Assembly (NCBI RefSeq): GCF_031769215.1
Contig: NW_026782000.1
Location: 186,001-250,000 of the forward strand
Direction: 5' to 3'
Source of the DNA: Ylistrum balloti
Taxonomy: Eukaryota
Length of the DNA stretch: 64,000 bases
Each line of letters starts with the position of its first letter. Position 1 is the first letter of the stretch. The position numbers were made by a program, and so were the translations under genes. The notes beneath the pieces are model-generated. The model was not told the origin of the DNA. It did no database searches and was given only the letters and a program-made list of their open reading frames with translations. This document shows, piece after piece, positions 36,897 to 51,671 of the stretch.

Positions 36897-38298
36897 CGCC
36901 TTTTCAAACAGTCCGGACATCGAACTGTAATTTTAGTAATACTAAAAATCCAACAGTTTGTATATATATATGGTATTTTCACAAACTCGATATTTAGTTT
37001 AGTTTAAACAATATTTTATTCAATGTTTAACATTTAGATATACATATAATTCAAATCTTAACTAAGAGGATTTGGTAACAAGCTTAAAGCTTATGTAAAA
37101 CCATCTCCTAAAGTGTTATACCATTCACATATCGACAGAGTGGTCCAACTAAAAAGGAATGCTGGTGGCAGCTATAAAATTACAATCCGAGTACTGATCA
37201 TGTGTTTGAAATGTAGTCGCGTGCAAATTAGATATGAGTTGTTTTTAATTCCCTATATTACCTCTGAACTGAGGAGTGCAGAGAGTATAGAATATTATAA
37301 CATATATAACATAACATTTGGTATAATTAAGAATAGATACATAGTAAGTACAATAATAAAGTATAAAGGTACATAATAAGATAGTTGTACATGCACATTG
37401 AGAAACCGACCTTATAATGTGGGAAGCATAATGATAAATTGGTATTAATACATTTGAGTAAGTAAAATATTGTGCAAGATATGCACTGCAATGCTAATTT
37501 TGTAGGCCTACAGCACACAGGGGTTGGGGATACCCCTATCAGCAAGGTGTTGCAGGCTCTCAATTTTTTCACAAAAAATATAAATACATTATGCCATGCA
37601 CATATATCATCATTTTAAAGCCCAATTGATGCATGCATTGGGTATAGTCATATTTGCAATTTGTAAGAATATAAGTGTAGTACACTATACAACATCATTA
37701 TGCAATATAATGATAAGTTTGTAGGCTCACAGCACACAGGGGTTGGGGATAGCCCTACCAGCAAGGTGTTGCAGGCCCACAATTTTCACAAAAGATGTAA
37801 ATACATTATGCCATGCACATATATCATAATTTAAAGCCTAGTTGACGCATACATTGGTTATAGTAATATTTGCCATTTGTAAGAATGTAAATATGGTACA
37901 ATATGGCGACATAGCAATCATGAAAAATAATAGGTACAGTATTTGTAGTGAAGGTAAATCATTATAAGTATATAATATGTCCATACTAAGGGCAAGTATA
38001 TTATATTAACTAGGGACTAAATTTCATATTACTGATACATGTAAGTTCTTTGCGGATACCGTTAAAGTACGTATATGTTACGTTGGTAAATAATGCGTGA
38101 ATGGATATCTACATTCAACTAAAGACAAATATAGTATTTCTACGCAGTTTAGAGCGAGTATGGGTAAGTAATTTATGATTACATTGGTAAGAGGTACAAG
38201 ATTTGCAATGAAAGTACATCGTGACCAAGTGATTGAGAACGAGATTGTTGTTAGAGTAAGCACAATCAAGTTATTTTTACAAATGGAAATGGATACGA

Positions 38299-41200
38299 TC
38301 ATGCAAATCGTTCACTTTTCATTATATATTCTTGAACAGCTGATACGATTTCTTCGTTTTGCTGTATAGTTAAATCGGGATTTCCACAGAGTAGACATTC
38401 AGTATTTAAATCATAATTGAGTGCCCAAATGTATTGTTCTCTTATGTTTGTGTATTTTTCACAAGCAAATAAATAATGAAAGTTGTCTTCAATATAACCG
38501 CATGTACAAAAAGGATCGTCGCTAATGTTTTTCTCAAAGAGGTGTGCTTTTAAGCTGCTACATAATAGTCTAAGTCTCGAATGGTATATTTGGGCTGTTC
38601 TGTTTCCATAGGATCGGTAACTAGGCGATTTACCTTTGTCTCTATAAAGATAATGTTTAAGGACAGACACAGAGGGGTTTTCTCGTATAGTGGTAGGTAG
38701 ATTGTTCCACAAATGGACAGTAGAAGGAAGGAAGGAGTTTTTGTAGAAACTGGTTTTAGTTTTAATGGTAGATAAATGATTCGATTGTCTAGTTCTCATA
38801 TTATGTATTTCGGAATTTCTCCGTGGAAGTATATTAGAAAGAGAAGACGGAGTATGGTTATAGACCATGTTGTGGAGCTTGATAATCTTATGTTTTTTCC
38901 TGCGTTCTGCTAATGTGTCCCAACATGTATCTTTATATAACAATTCTATACTTACCAATTTTGTTGCTCCAGTAACAATCCGTGCTGATTCCTTGTGAAT
39001 AGATTCTAGTTTATTAATAAAGACAATTGGCAAAGAATCCCAAACAACATCAAGGATCGGCAAAATATATGAGAAATATAAACGTTCTAACGTGCTACGG
39101 TCAAGAACAAATTTGAGCTTCCTTAGGGCAGATAACCTTTTGGACGCCTTCAAGATAATACCGTCAACATGATTAGCCCAACTTAAATCTTAATTGATAT
39201 ATACACCTAGATGTTTGTGTGTTATTACTTGATTGATATTTGTGTTATCCATACTAAGTTGTGGAAGGATAGTTTTTGAAGATTTCCTACTGATTAGTAA
39301 CGACTCTGTTTTATTTGCATTAAACGTAACTAGCCATTGATTACCCCAAGCATGAATATTACATAAGTCATTATTTAATACGTTGGCTGAGTTGATAGCG
39401 TTGTCTACTACGAGATAGAGGGTAGTGTCATCTGCAAATAATTTTATAATACTAGCAATGTCAGAAACTATATCATTGATAAAAATCAGAAACAATAAGG
39501 GTCCTAAAATAGAGCCCTGTGGAACCCCAGCTTTAATTGTACCATAGTTTGAAAATTCACCGTTTACCAAAACTCGCTGTTTCCTATCAGAAAGATAACT
39601 TTTTAACCACCCTAATAGCGTTCCCCTTATGCCTGCTTTGTTTAATTTATAAAGGAGACCCTTATGCCACACCCTATCAAAAGCTTTCCTTATATCTAGG
39701 AAAATAACCTGCACCTCCTTCCCACAATCTAAAGCTTTACCAATATCATTTGTAATAGTCAATAGTTGATTTATAGCAGAATCACCTCTTCTAAAACCCG
39801 ACTGGTGTTCGGTGAAAAAAGAAGAGTCTGGTAGAAAATTATACACATGTTTAAAAACACACCTTTCCATAACCTTTCCTATTATACTAATAAGGGAAAT
39901 CGGTCTATAATTTGAAACTACACTAGGGTCGTCTTTTTTAAATATAGGAATAACATTAGCCATTTTCCACATTTCGGGATATGATTGATTCGACAGTGAT
40001 TTGTTAAAAAGACTACAAAGAGGCCCACTTATTAAGTCAGGCCCAGGTGCTTTAGACGCTTCAAGTATACTAATAGCATCAGAGACGTCCTGCTGTGTAA
40101 TAGTAATATTTTCTAGTATGATAGTAATATTGTCATGATTAACTGGAAGGGGTCGATGTAAGTCGTTAAGTTCGGTCTGTTGAATAAAGTAGTCATTAAG
40201 AATAGTGGCTTTTTCTTTATCATCAATGTACTCTTGACCATTATAAATGATCATAGGTACGTCAGTAGTTTTACATGAAAAGTTAGTTAATGAGTTCAAG
40301 ACTTTCCACCAATTTTTAGAAGAGTTAGGAGTGGTTTGAAGGTAAGATGATATTTTTTTGTAATAATTACTTTTCGCCTGCCGAATAGTATCAACACATG
40401 TATTTCTGACTTTTCTGAATGTTTCCCAATGAAGTGGGTTCTGTGTAGTCTTGGCTTTTGCATGAATTCTTTTTCTAGTTCTGATCAATTTACGTATATT
40501 ATTGTGCATCCAAGGCGGGTCAGCTTTTCTTATTGTGATACATTTGTTTGGTATTGTCTCTGAAGCTATTTGAGTAATTGTTTTTGTAACATAATCTGCA
40601 TCGAGATCTGTAGATAATGCTTCTGTATCATTCCAGGTAATGTTATTTAATTTCTCACGATAATTGTTAAAATTGCAATCTTTGTATAACCATATACGAC
40701 GTTTGGTGCATTTACAGTTCGGTGGGCGTTTGAATTTCAGATACGCATATATAGGACAGTGATACCTTATATTACTTTTCAGAAAATTATCACCTACATG
40801 GGATTGTTCAACAATACCATCATTGCTAACGAGAAACACATCTAGTAAGGATCTTGAGGTTTCTGTGAAATGTGTTGGCTCATTTATTAACTGCTTTAAA
40901 GCGAATTGGTTCATAATATCTTTAATTACACTGTTATTCGTGGATAGAATATTGTCATTCAAATCACCAGTAATAAGAATGTTTGTAATACCTGTACTAA
41001 ATGCAAGTTCTATAAAGTAATGGATTAAATTCCAAGTTTGGTCGTTGATGTTTGGGGGGCGGTAAAAAGTGCCAAGTAGCAGTTTATGAGATTTCAAATG
41101 TAATTCTAGCCATACACTTTCAACATTCCTGACCTCGAGATCTTTACGCCGTTTGACGATGATGTTTTTCCGAACATAGACCGCGACACCGCCACCAATT

Positions 41201-41727
41201 CGCGTTTGTCTGCTTTGACAAAAAGGTGGATAAAAATGGCCGTGAATGAGATCATCAGACGACTCGTTTGAGGGGTTTAGCCATGTTTCGGTAAACGCAA
41301 GCACGTCAAAAGTATTCAGTTCAGTAAACAATACATCGATTTTATGAAGGATACTTTGCACGTTATAGTGAACAACACTTATGTCTTCGTCCGCTGTAGT
41401 TGGACCTGGATTGCTTTATACATCTCCACATTGAACAAGAAGATCATATAAGACTACAAGAATGTCTAATAGTAAAATGAAAGTAAGTAAGACATACCAA
41501 TTCTGACTTACTTTACGTGGATGTACCTTTTTAGGACCTCTAGTGATTACACCTATACCGTATAGGAAGATACAAGTGATCATGGGTAAGGCTTTCCATC
41601 CAAAGTTAAGTACCAGGTTTACTGCCAGTACAGTAATTGGATCTAAGCGTTTGTGTAAGGGTAATGTTAGGGATTTGTCATAGAAGGCGCCGGTAAGAGT
41701 TCGGTGGCTTATTACGTCACTCGGCAT
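38299..41727 (-). pseudogene. LINE ORF2: hydrophobic leader, 2A-like motif, AP endonuclease, reverse transcriptase, Cys/His C-terminus; two in-frame TAA stops
   Basis: Track ORFs 41416-41727, 39190-41361 and 38299-39153 are in one frame, broken by TAA at 41416-41418 and 39190-39192. APE motifs FTETWL, GGGVAVY, GTFYRPP, ITGDLND; RT motifs YRPISL, QSGFR, FLDIRKAFDRVWH, GVPQGSILGPLLF, LFADD, HKHLG. Confidence 0.93.
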
Positions 41728-42272
41728 CAGGTAATACCAGATACGTAGGAGAGGTAAGTACTTTTAAACACACCGCCTTCTACGCTTGAGAGTTCAAATA
41801 TAATTTTCAGATGAATAATGAAAAGTTTCACAAAAATTGTATACATGATCAGTACTCGGATGTAATGCGTTCCAATAACAAAAGCAATGAAAACAACAAA
41901 GTGTATATACATATAAAGAAACATATGGAGACATTTTGCACCATGGAGTTGAGATAAGTTAAGTATTCAATATGTACTTGTGCAGCAAAGTTGGCTAGCA
42001 AACGTTCAGAGTTATAAGATTGGTTTCGGTATGTAATATCAATATTTAATTATTAGTTAAAGTTAGTTATAGATATAATGGTTCCTATATCCTACGTCTG
42101 GGTATAATAAGTACAACAACGCTGCCAGTATTCAGCGTTCAGTAGAAACTAGGTTGCAACTCTCTAAAAAAAAGTCCACAGAGAGCTGGTACCGCGGGGC
42201 TTACATGAAACCCGGATACGTAGGGGTAGAGACACTTACGATCGGAATCAGATCGTGTACAAATACATATGG

Positions 42273-43060
42273 TTAATCTGAAATAGAGTCCGTCGATCCA
42301 CCACCGGATTTGGGAGCCGAGTCACGATTCCTATCGACGACATGGCCGTAAGGTACGAGATCGATCTCGCGTCGAATAGAGACTCTTTCACCCGCGAGGA
42401 TTTTCATGAAAATCTTGCCATCAATTGACCAGGTTTGCAATATTTTCTTGGTTTTCACTAAATTCCTTGCGTGGTAAGAGATGGAGTTTCTAATCTTGGT
42501 TAGATCCTCGTTAACCATTATGTGCTTATAACTTGGGATTTCTTTAAAGTGTTTCCTTGCCATCATGAGATTGCGTTTCGCTTCTCGACTAGATAACCTA
42601 GCAATGATCTGTCGTGGTTTATTACTCCTTCTGGGGCCAACACGGTGAGACCTTACAATGTCCTCTGGTCTGAGAACTACCCCTGGGAGTTTGGTAACCG
42701 CATCGAGGATCATTTCCGTTGTATTCTCGACACCATTGGACTCCTCGAATCCAGAGAATCTGACACATTCCCGGCGGCTGTATTGCTCGAGATCATCTAA
42801 TTTATATTTAAGATCGTCATTTTCAGTTTTGAGTGCATTTATTTCAGCTTTAAGAGGCACGATTTCATTATTCACGATACCCTGTATATCATATTTCGGA
42901 CGCTGAGGGCAATGCGCTGGATGTCAAGGTCAGACAGACTGCATGAGGGAGGCTGAGTGCCGGGGGTTGAAGTCATATGAGGTTGGGCAAGACCTTGAGA
43001 GAGGGGCAACATTGGCGATCCTTGGAAGCTGAGTTGCTGAGGAATATAGTTCATAGCCAT
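42273..43060 (-). pseudogene. LINE ORF1 (coiled coil plus RRM/L1-ORF1-like domain), frameshifted near 42885
   Basis: Track ORFs 42872-43060 and 42273-42875 join through a frameshift. Motifs LKTENDDLKYKLDDLEQYSRRECVRFSG, IVRSHRVG, IIARL, VNEDLTK, TWSIDGKIF. The frame probably extends upstream toward about 43200. Confidence 0.85.
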
Positions 43061-44689
43061 GATTGGATTATGGTGTTTACAGTCCGTAGATAGATAGCTT
43101 CCGTTCAGTATAGTGTCACAATGAGATAAAGAATTATCGAGCTTATTTTTTTGGGTGATCTCGACTTTAACGACGACGTGGATTGGTGTGAGCGTTCTCT
43201 TTTACCAGTGTTAATTATAATGCTCATATTACATAGATAGTACACAAATGGTTACGTACACATTCACTAGATTACACAGTACGCGCACTTGGTGAACCAG
43301 AGCACAGGTGAGTTGTTTATCGATCTATTAATAGGCTTCCGAAATCGAACGTACAGGTATTGTGGACATAACTGAAAGTCAATGAACTGTGACCTGAGAG
43401 CCGGTATACAAAATCTTGTAGTGACTTATATTATTAAATACAGACATTTTTACCAACTTTCCTCCGTCAGGAAGCTCCCTCTGTGCTCGATATTTCATCC
43501 ATTGATAAACAATTTAGAATTACGATCGTTACTAACTTAGATAGAAATTGAGAGATATTCCTCAAGTGGCAGCTGTTCCTGCAAAACTGTACATTGTTTT
43601 CTAAAGGACAGTGGCAATATTTATACGTACCAAACGAGAAAATGTCTAACAGTATATACACGAGAGAGAACAAGGCGGAACCACATAAAATTACTTGAAG
43701 TTGCCCCCCACCCCACCACACCCTCCACCCCACCACACCCTCCACCCCCTACCCCTCAATCTCCATCAAGTCAGTTAATTCTTCAGATAATTTCCTATAC
43801 TGCCCAGAAATGTTTATAGATTCTTGTGATACAGATGTTTCGCTACGTCTAATGATAGTGAAATAACGGGTAAAAACTACGGTGATATTATCATCAGCCT
43901 GGCATACCTTTTTACGTTTTAACCAATAAGAACGTTGCTTTCTACTTATTGCAATGAAACATTACCGATTTAACTGTTCGGAAGCAAATGTGTGAACGTG
44001 TTTTACGAAATTTTTGCTGTGTATACTTCAGGCTTTCTTCTTGTTTGATAACACTTATCTTTATAACAGAGAACAACGCAAAACATTAGAATTAGAATAC
44101 TTGTATGTAAAAAGCTACATGTAATCCAAAATGATGCTGTCTGGCTGTTGTAACTCATAGATATCCGATGTCAAAGAATAAGCTAATTTTTGGACAAAGA
44201 TCTACAAGATAATTTATATTGGGCCATATTTTTCTTTACAGATTACTCTTGAAAGATACAATTTAGTCAGCCAAATCCAGTATAATTGATCAATTGAAAA
44301 CTTGAAGACGACGTCCGAAGTTTTAATCAAGGAGAGATCCTGTTATAGACTTTACCTAGAATGCATAAAATAGAAACTTCTGGTTAACCATCAACCACTG
44401 CCCCCTTTCCCACCCCTTCATGAAAAATATGTATCATTGTCCTCTACATTTATCTAATATTTTTTTTATTCTACAAACGGACGCACCTGTGACCAAGCAC
44501 CATGCAACATATACCATCATCTTTAAATTGAATATGTACGTTTTTTTGATAACCAATACAAATTTCGTCACCTCCAAAACCTTACTTACATCAAACAAAG
44601 CAAATAAACACACATAGAATACACATCAGGTGCAATTGTGCCTGCATATGGTTAGTGACAATAAGCATTTGGGGAAATGCATGACTATT

Positions 44690-45440
44690 CCGGTTATATC
44701 AAAATAAGATCGATTTTCTAAGTACTCTAGATACTCAATAATGTACGATATCTAATTTGCAGATATGCTATATAGATCTAGCTAGATCGATTTACAAATG
44801 TCCTGGTTGCATCACAAAACGACAAATATGGCGACTTATTGGATTCAGCCATTACATTTCCCTGTCTATTTGTTGTAAGTATACATATACATTAGCATAT
44901 TTTGTCTATATAAATCAAATAGAAGAAACCGGTATATTTCAAGTTGTTACAACTGTTTAAATCGAACATCGTTCAGTTAACGATTTTGCCACCAAGATAT
45001 CGGCAACTGACTAACACCCAACTCATGGTCTGGAGAGATGCAGGTTGATGGACATTATGGTCGTTATAATAATCTTATTGAGAAATACCGTTTCTTTGTG
45101 TAACGTAGACTGGCCTCAGTCTCTAGAATATTTAATTATGAGCAAATTGAATCTCGTAATTCTGATTTCATGGAGATGTATGGTTCCAGACCTAATTTTC
45201 ACAGGAAAGGGAGATTAGCAAATAAAAATGTAGCTATTTCTTAACGAAACTTTGGGGATTGTAGCCAATCTTAAAAAATAAGAAATCGAGCGTGTTTGAT
45301 GCTCGTTAATACTGTCTGGCTGTTCCATTGTTGTTTAACCTTGCTTTCATTCGAGAACGTGATATTACGTGTTTGGTGTAAGATTTAAATGGAGAAAGTT
45401 GATAAAGCAACAGCCTCTTTCCGTTACGGAACAAGTAGTC
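44690..45440 (+). mobile_element. Decayed Penelope-like RT relic plus 3' tail (second copy at about 50290-51030)
   Basis: AYFVYINQI resembles the PLE RT motif AYGVYISQL. The tail (GCTCGTTAATACTG...GAGAACGTGATATTACG) is shared with 57215-57300. Confidence 0.5.
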
Positions 45441-47669
45441 TTGTCATCAATGTGTCATTTGCAGGAGTCTGCGTGTAAGTTTTCGTTCGTTCAGTATTTG
45501 TCCATAGCTTCATCTATTTTGCATTTGAATTAAGATTTAGATGACAAAATCGGAATTTTCGTTTTCAAAATCACTCCATATATTAAAGCGGTCTAATTGT
45601 GAATGGGCTAGGGGTATCTCCGTCAGTGAATGTGGGCTTGTCCGTAATCCTTTTTAAAAGTAAAATGAACATTATAGATGGATGCATTACATATATTAAG
45701 TGTTCAAGTTCTCATTTCATATGAGAGTTAATGCAATTAATTTTTGCATTTGAGCGGTCATTCATCAATTCTTCGATAAGATTCTACCCATATAACATAA
45801 GAAATGATAACATACCAATGTCCTTTTCATTACATAACACACAATAATATGTTTCCAGCTGACTTTCAAGATATCTAACCGTCTCTGGTTCCATATAATT
45901 ATCCCCAAACCACTGTGTTCCTATTGCCTCGAATGTTTTTCTTACTCTTCCCAGACCACACAATAATTAACTACGTTGCATAAAAACCATCCAAAATCCA
46001 TGTTTTATAAATATATCCTCTCATAATGTTAACAACAACAGGTTCTTTTGATTGAGCTATCTACAAATGATATTACCAGTTATGACAGTACTGTAATAAG
46101 AACACCTTACTCAGATATAATGGTTCTTTTATCTTCGTTATTTCATGTCGTTCGCGTGAAATCAAAATTTCTCGACATGTCAGACAGGATAATTTGTCAA
46201 CACTATTCTAAGAATGACTGCATTTTGATAATAACAAAATATGTTTCATATCACTATATATATCTTGTACAATCACTAATTTTCGGGCATTTATATGAAA
46301 TCTTATCCATGCCGTATCATATCAAGAGTCCTGTGGCTTATAGTTTAGGATTTTGCATTTGAGTCCATGTTGTGCAAAAAATAAACGTAAGTCATAAAAA
46401 TATATTTATTAGAATTAAGCTAGTGTCTGACGACCTTATTTTGGAACAAATGTGATGAGTTTCTTAAATCATTTGTAATGGAAACCAATTGATTAAAATC
46501 CTGTTTATCGCATCATTTATTTTGGTAAGTCATCTCAGCTCCATATGCACGTTCACTTTCCGATATGCTATCTTTCATTAACTGGAATGAAAATAGTTCA
46601 ACATCCTAAAGAGATTGACTCTATGTACTGCTATTTTCAATACACTAGTTAGATTTGTACGACAACTCCGCAGCTAACAGGAAAATGAGATTTATGATAT
46701 AATGAGTGCCATCTAGTACGTGATCATTACAACGTCATTGTATTGGGCATAGAAAAGTCGACGGTTCCCCATCGAAATAACAGTGTCATTTAAGAGACTG
46801 AACTACCGATATTGAATAATTCATTTTAGTTCGAATCAAGTTAAATTTGGAATACTGGGGTAAAATTATGGGAAATATCAATACAGCCATTGAACAGTCT
46901 TCTTTGCGGCATTTATGGTGGACATAATATCACTGTGCTACTACGCAGTACGTTTGCCTGCCAAACTCTGTCATTTAGTACAGCCATAACCACCCCAACC
47001 CCCTTGCTTCCTCGATATATTCAGAACTTCCGATCATTATCGCTCTCTGCATACCCCGAAAACATCAATGCAAAAAATTAAATGGGCTATGTACGACACC
47101 TTGTGGAGAAAACGTGAAGGCTAGTTTGATCCTTTGATGTACATCTAACGAATCTGTAGGTCGCGTAACGGTATAAGGTAATTTTACTATTATATGTCCC
47201 TGAGATGCAGAGAGCAAACGTGATCACCCCTTGATACTAGAAACCACAGGGAGAATGGTTTGTGAAGATGTTCTTGTTTCTTCTATCAATGTCAAAATAA
47301 AAGACAAGAAATTGTACAAAATGTAAGAAGAAATATATTATATTGTCAACAATTTATGTAAATAAACATATATAAAATACAATAAAAAATGTAAGTTACC
47401 ATATCTTATCATAAAACATGGTTGTATTTGGTTTTCACCGGACAATCAGTCAATGCTTCGATTATTTGTCTTGGCGTCTTTTGTTAGAGTAGTACGGATA
47501 CCCGAGAATGAATTTGGCGCGTTCTATTTGTCAACGTCAATGATGATAGGTATGTAAAGTTTGAAAACCAATTACTTCAGGTTCGGAGACACCATTTTGT
47601 CCATCTATTGCAAACTGGATGCGGTTGTCAGCAGAAGAGATTGTTTCGCCTTAGATGTTACATGATAAT

Positions 47670-48976: not shown

Positions 48977-51671
48977 CGCCTCTTCAAACAGTCCGGACAT
49001 CGAACTGTAATTTTAGTAATACTACAAGTCCAACAGTTTATATATATATGTGGTATAATCACATATACGCACGAGACTGATTTTTCACAAACTCGATATT
49101 TCATCCATTGATAAACAATTTAGAATTACGATCGTTACTAACTTAGATAGAAATTGAGAGATATTCCTCAAGTGGCAGCTGTTCCTGCAAAACTGAAAAC
49201 TGTACATTGTTTTCTAAGGGATGACAGTGGCAATATTTAGACGTACCAAACGAGAAAATGTCTAACAGTATATACACGAGAGAGAACAAGGCGGAACCAC
49301 ATAAAATTACTTGAAGTTGCCCCCCACCCCACCACACCCTCCACCCTACACCCCCACCCCTCAATCTCCATCAAGTCAGTTAATTCTTCAGATAATTTCC
49401 TATACTGCCCAGAAATGTTTATAGATTCTTGTGATAAGATGTGATACGTCTAATGATAGTGAAATATAACGGATAAAAACTGCGGTGATATTATCATCAG
49501 CCTGGCATACCTTTTTACGTTTTAACCAATAAGAACGGTGCTTTCTACTTATTGCGATGAAACATTACCGATTTAACTGTTCGGAAGCAAATGTGTGAAC
49601 GTGTTTTACGAAATTTTTGCTGTGTATACTTCAGGCTTTCTTCTTGTTTGATAACACTTATCTTTATAACAGAGAACAACGCAAAACATTAGAATTAGAA
49701 TACTTGTATGTAACAGCTACAGGTAATCCAAAATGATGCTGTCTGGCTGTTGTAACTCATAGATATCCGATGTCAAAGAATAAGCTAATTTTTGGACAAA
49801 GATCTACAAGATAATTTATATTGGGCCATATTTTTCTTTACAGATTACTTTTGAAAGATACAATTTAGTCAGCCAAATCCAGTATAATTGATCAATTGAA
49901 AACTTGAAGACGACATCCGAAGTTTTAATCAAGTAGAGATCCTGATATAGACTTTACCTAGAATGCATAAAATAGAAACTTCTGGTTAACCATCAACCAC
50001 TGCCCCCTTTCCCACCCCTTCATGAAAAATATGTATCATTGTCCTCTACATTTATCTAATATTTTTTTTTATTCTACAAACGGACGCACCTGTGACCAAG
50101 CACCATGCAACATATACCATCATCTTTAAACTGAATATGTACGTTTTTTGATAACCAATACAAATTTCGTCACCTCCAAAAACTTACTTACATCAAACAA
50201 AGCAAATAAATACACATAGAATACACATCAGGTGCAATTGTGCCTGCATATGGTTAGTGACAATAAGCATTTGGGGAAATGCATGACTATTCCGGTTATA
50301 TCAAAATAAGATCGATTTTCTAAGTACTCTAGATACTCAATAATGTACGATATCTAATTTGCAGATATGCTATATAGATCTAGCTAGATCGATTTACAAA
50401 TGTCCTGGTTGCATCACAAAACGACAAATATGGCGACTTATTGGATTCATCCCTTACATTTCCCTGTCTATTTGTTGTAAGTATACACATACATTAGCAT
50501 ATTTTGTCTATATAAATCAGATAGAAGAAACTGGTATATTTCAAGTTGTTACAACTGTTTAAATCGAACATCGTTCAGTTAACGATTTTGTCACCAAGAT
50601 ATCGGCAACTGACTAACACCCAACTCATGGTCTGGAGAGATGCAGGTTGATGGACATTATGGTCGTTATAATAATCTTATTGAGAAATACCGTTTCTTTG
50701 TGTAGCGTAGACTGGCCTCAGTCTCTAGAATATTTAATTATGAGCAAATTGAATCTCGTAATTCTGATTCGTGGAGATGTATGATTCCAGACCTAATTTT
50801 CACAGGAAAGGGAGATTAGCAAATAAAAATGTAGCTATTTCTTAACGAAACTTGGGGGCTTGTAGCCAGTCTAAAAAATAGGAAATCGAGCGTGTTTGAT
50901 GCTCGTTAATACTGTCTGTCTGTCCCGTTGTTGTTTAACCTTGCTTTCATTCGAGAACGTGATATTACGTGTTTGGTGTAAGATTTAAATGGAGAAAGTT
51001 GATAAAGCAACAGCCTCTCTCCGTTACGGAACAAGTAGTCTTGTTATCAATGTGTCATTTGCAGGAGTCCACGTGTAAGTTTTCATTCGTTCAGTATTTG
51101 TCCATGTTTCATCTATTTTGCATTTGAATTAAGATTTAGATGACAAAATCGGAATTTTCGTTTTCAAAATCACTTCATATGTTAAAGCGGTCTAATTGTG
51201 AATGGGCTAGGGGTATCTCCGTCAGTGAATGTGGGCTTGTCCGTAATCCTTTTTAAAAGTAAAATGAACATTATAGATGCATGCATTACATATATTAAGT
51301 GTTCAAGTTCTCATTTCATATGAGAGTTAATGAAATTAATTTTTGCATTTGCGCGGTCATTCATAAATTCTTCAATAAGATTCTACCCATATAACATAAG
51401 AAATGAAAACATACCAATGTCCTTTTCATTACATAACACAGAAACCTTGTTTTTATAGGATTTAAATTTTAAAAAAAAATACATGACAAAAACGGGGATA
51501 GCCGTATTGAATTCATGCGGTAACGCTATTGTTCATGCTATGACATCACCACATATTTCCGTCCTTTCATACGCTCCAGGGTATACCACACTTGTGATAT
51601 CACTAGAGCCAATTCACTGGATAACAGACGAGTATATGGTAAGTATATATACGCATTCAGAATCCAGGTTA

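Follow-up and report, generated by a model that had tools for sequence, protein, structure and literature searches.

The element and its copies

This study concerns a long interspersed nuclear element (LINE) in the genome of Ylistrum balloti, and in particular two stretches of that element which are complementary to one another, one in the leader of its second open reading frame (ORF2) and the other in its 3′ untranslated region (3′UTR). The window, by which we mean the whole stretch of DNA that was analysed, is 64,000 nucleotides (nt) long and comprises positions 186,001 to 250,000 of contig NW_026782000.1 (assembly GCF_031769215.1, forward strand). Coordinates refer to the window unless another sequence is named. 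The main parts of the element are as follows.

36996..43485, minus strand: LINE copy, nearly full length, ~6.49 kb, delimited by homology with other copies
43486..43495 (5′ copy) and 36986-36995 (3′ copy): target-site duplication AAATATCGAG, 10 nt, seen as a 10-mer on both sides of the insertion and once at the empty site
42263..43060, minus strand: ORF1 region, 265 amino acids in copies where it is open, frameshifted in the window copy
38299..41727, minus strand: ORF2 (endonuclease and reverse transcriptase), from Pfam RVT_1 and Exo_endo_phos and from ORF tables
36996..38298, minus strand: 3′UTR, ~1300 nt

Read in the sense of the element, the order is 5′UTR, ORF1, a 535-nt spacer, ORF2, and a 3′UTR whose tail lacks poly(A). 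ORF2 is ~1140 codons long and in the window copy carries two in-frame TAA stops (41416-41418 and 39190-39192). Pfam places Exo_endo_phos and then RVT_1 both in this copy and in one copy whose ORF2 is open; an N-terminal extension of ~110 residues (41397-41727) precedes the endonuclease domain. No Pfam family matched ORF1. The target-site duplication, together with an empty paralogous site at ~49090, provides flank evidence for a LINE insertion. The flank upstream of the LINE is itself duplicated within the window at 97% identity (43486-45500 and 49092-51100), the latter segment being the empty site.

A survey of the whole genome (648 Mb, 1372 contigs) yielded three other full-length copies and six truncated ones, which begin at six different 5′ points; all share the same 3′ base. 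By its domains, its duplication and the 5′ truncation of its copies, the element is an apurinic/apyrimidinic-endonuclease (APE)-type retrotransposon lacking long terminal repeats (non-LTR), that is, a LINE. Its nearest named relatives are bivalve proteins (Pinctada, Mytilus, Mya), along with bivalve DNA mislabelled as metagenome-assembled genomes of symbionts, and these relatives make a bivalve the most likely host.

Complementarity between the ORF2 leader and the 3′UTR

The two complementary stretches, which we call the arms of a putative long-range helix, are located as follows.

41843..41866, minus strand: 5′ arm, with a 14-nt conserved core at 41847-41860
37179..37203, minus strand: 3′ arm, with one bulged U (37184 or 37185)

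A first-pass annotation of the window had noticed that these stretches are complementary over 19 base pairs (bp) without interruption and over 24 bp with a single bulge. A repeat search, RNAduplex and shuffled sequences all bear this out. The repeat search returns a 19-nt, 100% complementary inverted repeat (37185-37203 and 41843-41861), and RNAduplex gives the two 25-mers an energy of -36.0 kcal/mol, with 24 bp formed and a single U bulged out. (RNAduplex applied to the whole leader against the whole 3′UTR produces a meaningless zipper; windows of 40 nt were used instead.) Exact complementarity of the leader (596 nt) to the 3′UTR (1301 nt) extends to 19 nt at most, and no more than 15 nt is attained in any of 1000 local shuffles. 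Within the whole 6.5-kb element the arm pair is the sole non-local inverted match of at least 13 nt, and folding the full 6.5-kb RNA to its minimum energy yields the helix as well. Its borders are sharp, with no likeness past 24-25 nt, and each arm contains the palindromes AGTACT and TGATCA.

The placement of the arms had been given as about 190 nt from the 3′ end and upstream of ORF2, and this is correct: counted from the 3′ end of the element, the 3′ arm is at 183-207 nt, and the 5′ arm is 116-139 nt upstream of the ORF2 AUG. The two are 4.6 kb apart. The 3′ arm falls outside any predicted local hairpin and is single-stranded in the consensus local tail fold computed by RNAalifold.

The complementarity is beyond chance, and it is of the kind that characterizes cyclization interactions such as those of the Ty1 CYC elements and the flavivirus cyclization sequences. 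It is not of the kissing-loop kind found in plant viruses, where 5-8 nt in the loops of two local hairpins are complementary; the arms form a continuous 24-bp duplex. The annotation had also listed a second, weaker pair (37402-37417 with 42012-42027). Its letters are real (14 of 16 complementary, -14.5 kcal/mol), but chance alone would produce as much: at least one 16-mer having at least 14 complementary bases is present in 38% of shuffles, and the pair is missing from the minimum-energy fold.

Conservation within the family

Both arms are unchanged in all ten of the copies that reach both sites. These copies, 96-99% alike, belong to family A, in whose 3′ ends the 3′ arm is exact; a related subfamily B, ~85% alike, also has both arms. 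The first-pass annotation had named a copy-specific template switch as the explanation to adopt if the pairing were absent from the consensus and from relatives. This is not what the copies and relatives show, and the occurrence of both arms in every copy reaching both sites rules that explanation out.

In subfamily B, the two surviving 5′ arms depart from family A at the outermost pair of each side only, and most 3′ arms have the family A sequence. Among the A/B-identical blocks of the final 320 nt, a region of 83% identity, the longest (36 nt) contains the 3′ arm; the corresponding block around the 5′ arm, 22 nt, is unexceptional for the leader. Neither 14-nt core has changed between A and B. 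Contigs from runs of a related organism (organism C) that fall on the element represent many copies, 80-99% alike; among the well-supported differences listed none is in the arms, which is weak evidence.

Two further origins for the arms were considered and rejected. The arms are not part of another repeat, nor terminal inverted repeats of a DNA transposon: the 19-mer has 34 occurrences in the genome, confined to the LINE family of the window copy, and matches elsewhere with at most two mismatches occur in chance number. Two short copies with both arms (C1061 and C31) do not represent a non-autonomous derivative, being old copies individually shortened by different deletions.

Distant relatives

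The protein collection contains only one close relative of ORF2 (P0001, 77% at the amino acid level), encoded on a 4-kb contig, L059, of another organism, which derives from run SRR23468760. Upstream of ~55 nt before the AUG, the L059 leader can no longer be aligned to that of the window element by BLAST. MAFFT, applied to the two leaders, finds three common islands, and the 14-nt 5′ core makes up one of them; this core lies 123 nt before the ORF2 AUG in L059 and 120 nt before it in the window element.

The 3′ arm can be followed in a different set of sequences, family C, which consists of old, diverged, short 3′ ends in the same genome as the window (70-78% alike) with the last ~250 nt of the tail in common. 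Family C holds the complementary 14-nt 3′ core with a single A>G change, at which pairing is retained as U.G. The bases immediately bordering the core differ, on both sides, between family C and A/B. Both cores persist where the surrounding non-coding sequence has diverged by 17-50%. On the two arms, conservation thus ends at matching borders.

Unprompted, BLAST also reports the L059 leader as reverse-complementary to the 3′ arms of family C, over 27-31 nt, with a match of 27/31. The energies of the possible duplexes, listed below, are reciprocally specific, in that the flanks of L059 go with those of C-type arms and not with those of family A.

Family A 5′ arm with A/B 3′ arm: -37 kcal/mol
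Family A 5′ arm with C-type 3′ arm: -14 to -33 kcal/mol
L059 5′ arm with C-type 3′ arm: up to -42 kcal/mol, median -35 kcal/mol
L059 5′ arm with family A 3′ arm: -30 kcal/mol

When the L059 flanks were shuffled with the core held fixed, the observed values were reached in 2 of 1000 trials for the best duplex and in none of 1000 for the median; natural random flanks reached the observed L059/C values in 11 of 1000 (best) and 2 of 1000 (median) trials. Overall, the flank tests give p ~0.002-0.01. The individual pairs differ accordingly. The pair adjoining the core is A-U in family A and C-G in the L059/C combination, and on the opposite side of the core an A-U pair becomes U-A, a C-G pair becomes U.G, and the bulged U gives way to a G-C pair. 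Read across the two genomes, these differences would imply compensatory change in the flanks.

Neither a full-length family C element nor an L059-type 5′ arm was found in the genome of the window. Protein word searches with the N- and C-terminus of ORF2, aimed at the 3′ tail of L059 and at further close relatives, returned one short contig and nothing close, and a 20-nt tail word gave chance matches only across the metagenome and genome collections. That family C was a family of leaderless elements is the less fitting account of it; its copies resemble 5′-truncated LINE ends.

The upstream ORF and the start of ORF2

The 5′ arm lies inside a short open reading frame that ends at the start of ORF2.

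41727..41924, minus strand: short upstream ORF of 65 codons, holding the 5′ arm and ending in a UGA that overlaps with the AUG of ORF2 (UGAUG)

An overlap of stop and start, the sequence feature that goes with termination-reinitiation of the SART1 type, is conserved among the relatives: it reads UGAUG in A, B, L059 and family F3, UAAUG in family F2, and AUGA in family L088. The C-terminal peptide of the upstream ORF, ...STYLSYVSGIT in the window family, has counterparts ...YVSGVT, ...YVNGIT, ...YHIT and ...DSIT in relatives. A ...GIT-like peptide recurs in L059, F2 and F3 (the upstream-ORF sites compared were L059 1-167, L060, L061, L062, L064, L088 and L089). In family L089, an upstream ORF ending ...DSIT also contains the 5′ site of the pairing described below. 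In families A, L088 and L089, then, the 5′ site is always inside a short upstream ORF; two of these ORFs end at the ORF2 AUG and the third has the ...SIT end.

Over the last 20 codons of the upstream ORF, the alignment and the peptides show that differences between A and L059 are mostly synonymous; the upstream ORF is, for this reason, probably translated. Since its stop overlaps the ORF2 AUG, the arrangement suggests that ORF2 is made by termination-reinitiation. The 14-nt core itself encodes RVLI in the upstream ORF of both A and L059, and the residues around RVLI are not conserved.

Other families of the clade

In six more families of the clade we compared the leader with the true 3′UTR, whose 3′ end was placed by tail-end homology; leader windows of 40 nt were scored against block shuffles. 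The resulting z-scores are as follows.

A (window family): -6.5
F2: -1.9
F3: -0.1 to -2.0
L086: -0.1
L087: +1.2
L088: -5.0 (reached by 0 of 150 shuffles)
L089: -3.8

In L088, a site 51-110 nt before the ORF2 AUG pairs with a site 23-80 nt past the stop (2891-2950 and 6557-6613 of L088, ENA ERZ25069870). The helix is imperfect, comprising 44 bp including 8 G.U, with an energy of -62.8 kcal/mol in the sense RNA versus -43.5 in the antisense, and it is identical in three copies that are 98% alike. In L089, a 5′UTR site pairs with a 3′UTR site over 13+7 bp at -38 kcal/mol; this duplex is retained in an 88% relative from another sample, where the changes are one-sided only. Neither the L088 nor the L089 duplex is related in sequence to the family A helix. 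A 7x7 matrix set every leader against every 3′UTR; in it, three cognate pairs, those of A (-41.1), L088 (-48.0) and L089 (-37.2), each exceeded all 42 non-cognate pairs. By these sequence measures, complementarity between leader and 3′UTR recurs in part of the clade, namely in two of the six other families, and is not universal.

The 3′ tail and other features

Two features of the tail are conserved beyond the window family.

37067..37109, minus strand: conserved 3′-tail hairpin, from the RNAalifold consensus of A, B and C tails
36998..37023, minus strand: terminal 26 nt of the tail, at 100% identity with L086 6805-6830 and L087 6553-6578

The pairs of the hairpin are retained across the A, B and C tails, and no change affects both sides of a pair; the hairpin is a predicted recognition element for the reverse transcriptase. 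The 3′ arm lies ~70 nt upstream of it. The last ~100 nt of the tail can be aligned across several families. L086 and L087, with which the terminal 26 nt are shared, are elements of another bivalve assembly, and their ORF2 has ~48% amino acid identity to that of the window family. The element ends in ...GTTTAAACTAAACT without poly(A) (the terminus is also given as ...AAACTAAACT, likewise without poly(A)). Because other stringent-type clades also have an end lacking poly(A) and a hairpin, these features are not decisive for membership in the CR1 clade, the label used in the first-pass annotation.

Some further observations concern the 3′UTR and its surroundings. Two tandem units of ~217 nt, 84-92% alike, occupy 37480-37904; this region varies among copies, and many 3′ matches begin at one same point. 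One copy, C100, has an insertion of ~1.2 kb in its 3′UTR. Adjoining an old LINE tail elsewhere in the genome is a repeat of ~150 nt (L065, G000:C493:990042-990189), which has thousands of genome copies 95-97% alike (3901 candidates at first look). No Rfam family matched the element.

Interpretation

The complementarity of the arms, their conservation and the architecture in which they are set are plain in the DNA. As an interpretation, we propose that the arms pair with each other in the sense LINE transcript, as a long-range helix under selection, and we regard this as having about an even chance of being right. That the helix forms in vivo, and that it has a role there, we infer from sequence comparison, and the probability of any one particular function is clearly lower than one half.

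If such a helix forms, a 14-bp core, lengthened to 24 bp in the window family, would tie the ORF2 leader to the 3′UTR just upstream of the conserved tail, and ORF2 together with most of the 3′UTR (4.6 kb) would become a closed loop. The most likely role would be to gate the frequency of ORF2 starts, because a ribosome translating the upstream ORF would have to melt the helix. In addition, the tail recognized by the reverse transcriptase would be kept beside the site at which the enzyme is synthesized, which would favour action in cis. The first-pass annotation had likewise imagined a bridge from the 3′UTR to the start of ORF2, with control of ORF2 initiation or of cis-preference as its possible purpose; the structural half of that proposal, and that half alone, has gained comparative support, from all copies, subfamily B, the cores, the flanks and two other families. 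More tentatively, and with rather more doubt than belief, we suggest that a bivalve LINE clade closes its ORF2 cistron by a helix between upstream ORF and 3′UTR. This would be the first cyclization element of a non-LTR retrotransposon, linking reinitiation to the tail and offering a physical basis for cis-preference.

Several observations weigh against a selected helix. The annotation had asked for covariation, and the flanks do appear to co-vary between L059 and family C; but the 5′ arm in this comparison is from one genome and the 3′ arms, those of an old family, are from a second. The 3′ arm of L059 itself lies beyond its 4-kb contig, and no compensatory change in cis was seen within any single element. 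Subfamily B has lost the terminal pair at both ends of the helix without compensation. Old single B copies likewise carry uncompensated mismatches, which are expected in dead copies and are uninformative. Part of the conservation of the 14-nt core could be coding, given that it specifies RVLI in both A and L059. Four of the seven families (F2, F3, L086 and L087) show no pairing between leader and 3′UTR above shuffles, and such pairing is therefore not a universal requirement of the clade. In L089 the cognate energy of -37.2 is barely past the best non-cognate value of -36.7, and the duplex is no better in the sense than in the antisense strand. Finally, none of the runs listed for this species is on record as RNA; two runs of another organism, guessed to be RNA, yield contigs that cover parts of a related element.

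Among the alternatives, the one that survives best sees the arms as a fossil left when a small piece was copied once in inverted orientation. By template switching, for instance, a patch of 25-30 nt would have been reverse-copied in the family's ancestor, and it would have persisted without function because the family is young. The sharp borders of the complementarity are what such an event would leave; the copies of family A are so alike that identity of their arms says little; subfamily B is eroded at the ends of the helix only; and four related families have no analogue. Nevertheless, the persistence of both cores amid 17-50% non-coding divergence speaks against a functionless patch, as do the absence of any core change between A and B and the position of the 3′ arm, whose block of identity is the longest in the tail. 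Nor is such a patch in keeping with flanks that differ by lineage yet remain complementary, unlike the neutral decay of an ancestral repeat, or with two other families having independent complementarities of unrelated sequence. We consider a fossil unlikely, while giving it real weight.

A different account is that the arms are conserved separately and their complementarity is idle: the 5′ arm would belong to the upstream ORF or to a translation signal, and the 3′ arm to the start of the tail module, or else both would bind the same factor. The 5′ core is indeed in frame within a conserved upstream ORF, and the 3′ arm sits close to the 5′ border of the tail module common to family C, whose short, leaderless copies retain it; the palindromes present in each arm would suit the variant with a shared factor. 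Yet the peptide around RVLI is unconserved, whereas the conserved C-terminal part of the ORF is the one that shows synonymous changes, and the family C copies look like 5′-truncated LINE ends. Moreover, separate conservation would require that two independent 14-mers be exact complements with matching borders, a large coincidence (~4^-14 per site), and does not predict that the flanks match. We judge this account decidedly unlikely.

Very improbable, lastly, is that the helix serves as a double-stranded RNA trigger or target which feeds or attracts host small-RNA silencing: its 24-25 nt would fall in the small-RNA range, but the arms are 4.6 kb apart and do not make a precursor hairpin, master lineages across subfamilies and species should not have retained a feature that harms the element, and the L088 duplex, with its 8 G.U pairs, is far better in sense RNA, as would be expected if the transcript of the element itself maintained the structure.

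Relation to known systems

Two long-standing questions about LINEs are how ORF2 is translated from a bicistronic RNA and why its product works mainly in cis (reviewed in PMC3894237 and PMC2881922). If real, a helix between the start of ORF2 and the 3′ tail would answer both by a simple mechanism open to testing, in an element that has been recently active and that provides a clean empty site and natural sequence variants. The first-pass annotation knew of no such description in LINEs, and a full-text literature search on the topic agrees, finding no leader/3′UTR interaction described for LINEs; Ty1 and RNA viruses come closest as precedents.

In Ty1, short complements near both ends of the genomic RNA (CYC5 and CYC3) pair over kilobases and are reported, in a passage of PMC7969010 that cites Cristofari et al. 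2002, to be needed for cyclization and efficient reverse transcription. The likeness is that regions of a retrotransposon RNA pair over kilobases through complementary sequences. However, Ty1 is an LTR element that forms particles and uses a transfer RNA primer, whereas the window element, a LINE and hence non-LTR, is copied by target-primed reverse transcription. Its 5′ arm, furthermore, is in the ORF2 leader inside an upstream ORF rather than at the 5′ end of the RNA, and its helix is longer (24 bp).

Among positive-strand RNA viruses, the 3′UTR pairs with a distant upstream site in flavivirus cyclization sequences and in the 3′ translation enhancers of plant viruses, coupling translation to replication. 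The plant-virus enhancers act by loop-loop kissing of two hairpins and by binding initiation factors. The window element resembles these viruses in having a 3′UTR element complementary to a distant upstream site. It differs in that its arms would form one extended duplex, that the upstream partner is internal to a bicistronic RNA, and that no factor-binding element is known. Long-range RNA interactions in dengue and Zika are cited in PMC7969010.

With SART1, a non-LTR element of Bombyx, the point of contact is the start of ORF2. According to a passage of PMC3894237 citing Kojima et al. 2005, SART1 has a UAAUG stop-start at its ORF2 AUG, and a nearby RNA structure affects ORF2 initiation. Overlap of stop and start at the ORF2 AUG is common to both, as UGAUG, UAAUG or AUGA across the bivalve clade. 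In SART1, however, ORF1 itself serves as the upstream ORF, and the structure, a local one, is found downstream; the window element has a separate short ORF ~300 nt after ORF1, and its structure would be a 4.6-kb bridge to the 3′UTR.

Stringent-type LINEs, namely L2/CR1-like elements and their short interspersed nuclear element (SINE) partners, are recognized through a 3′ stem-loop (for background, see PMC5135761 and PMC5786205). The window element is like them in having a conserved tail hairpin, no poly(A), and a terminal part conserved across the families of its clade. Recognition in those elements is confined to the terminal ~100 nt; the 3′ arm described here, in contrast, lies upstream of the hairpin, and its partner is 4.6 kb away.

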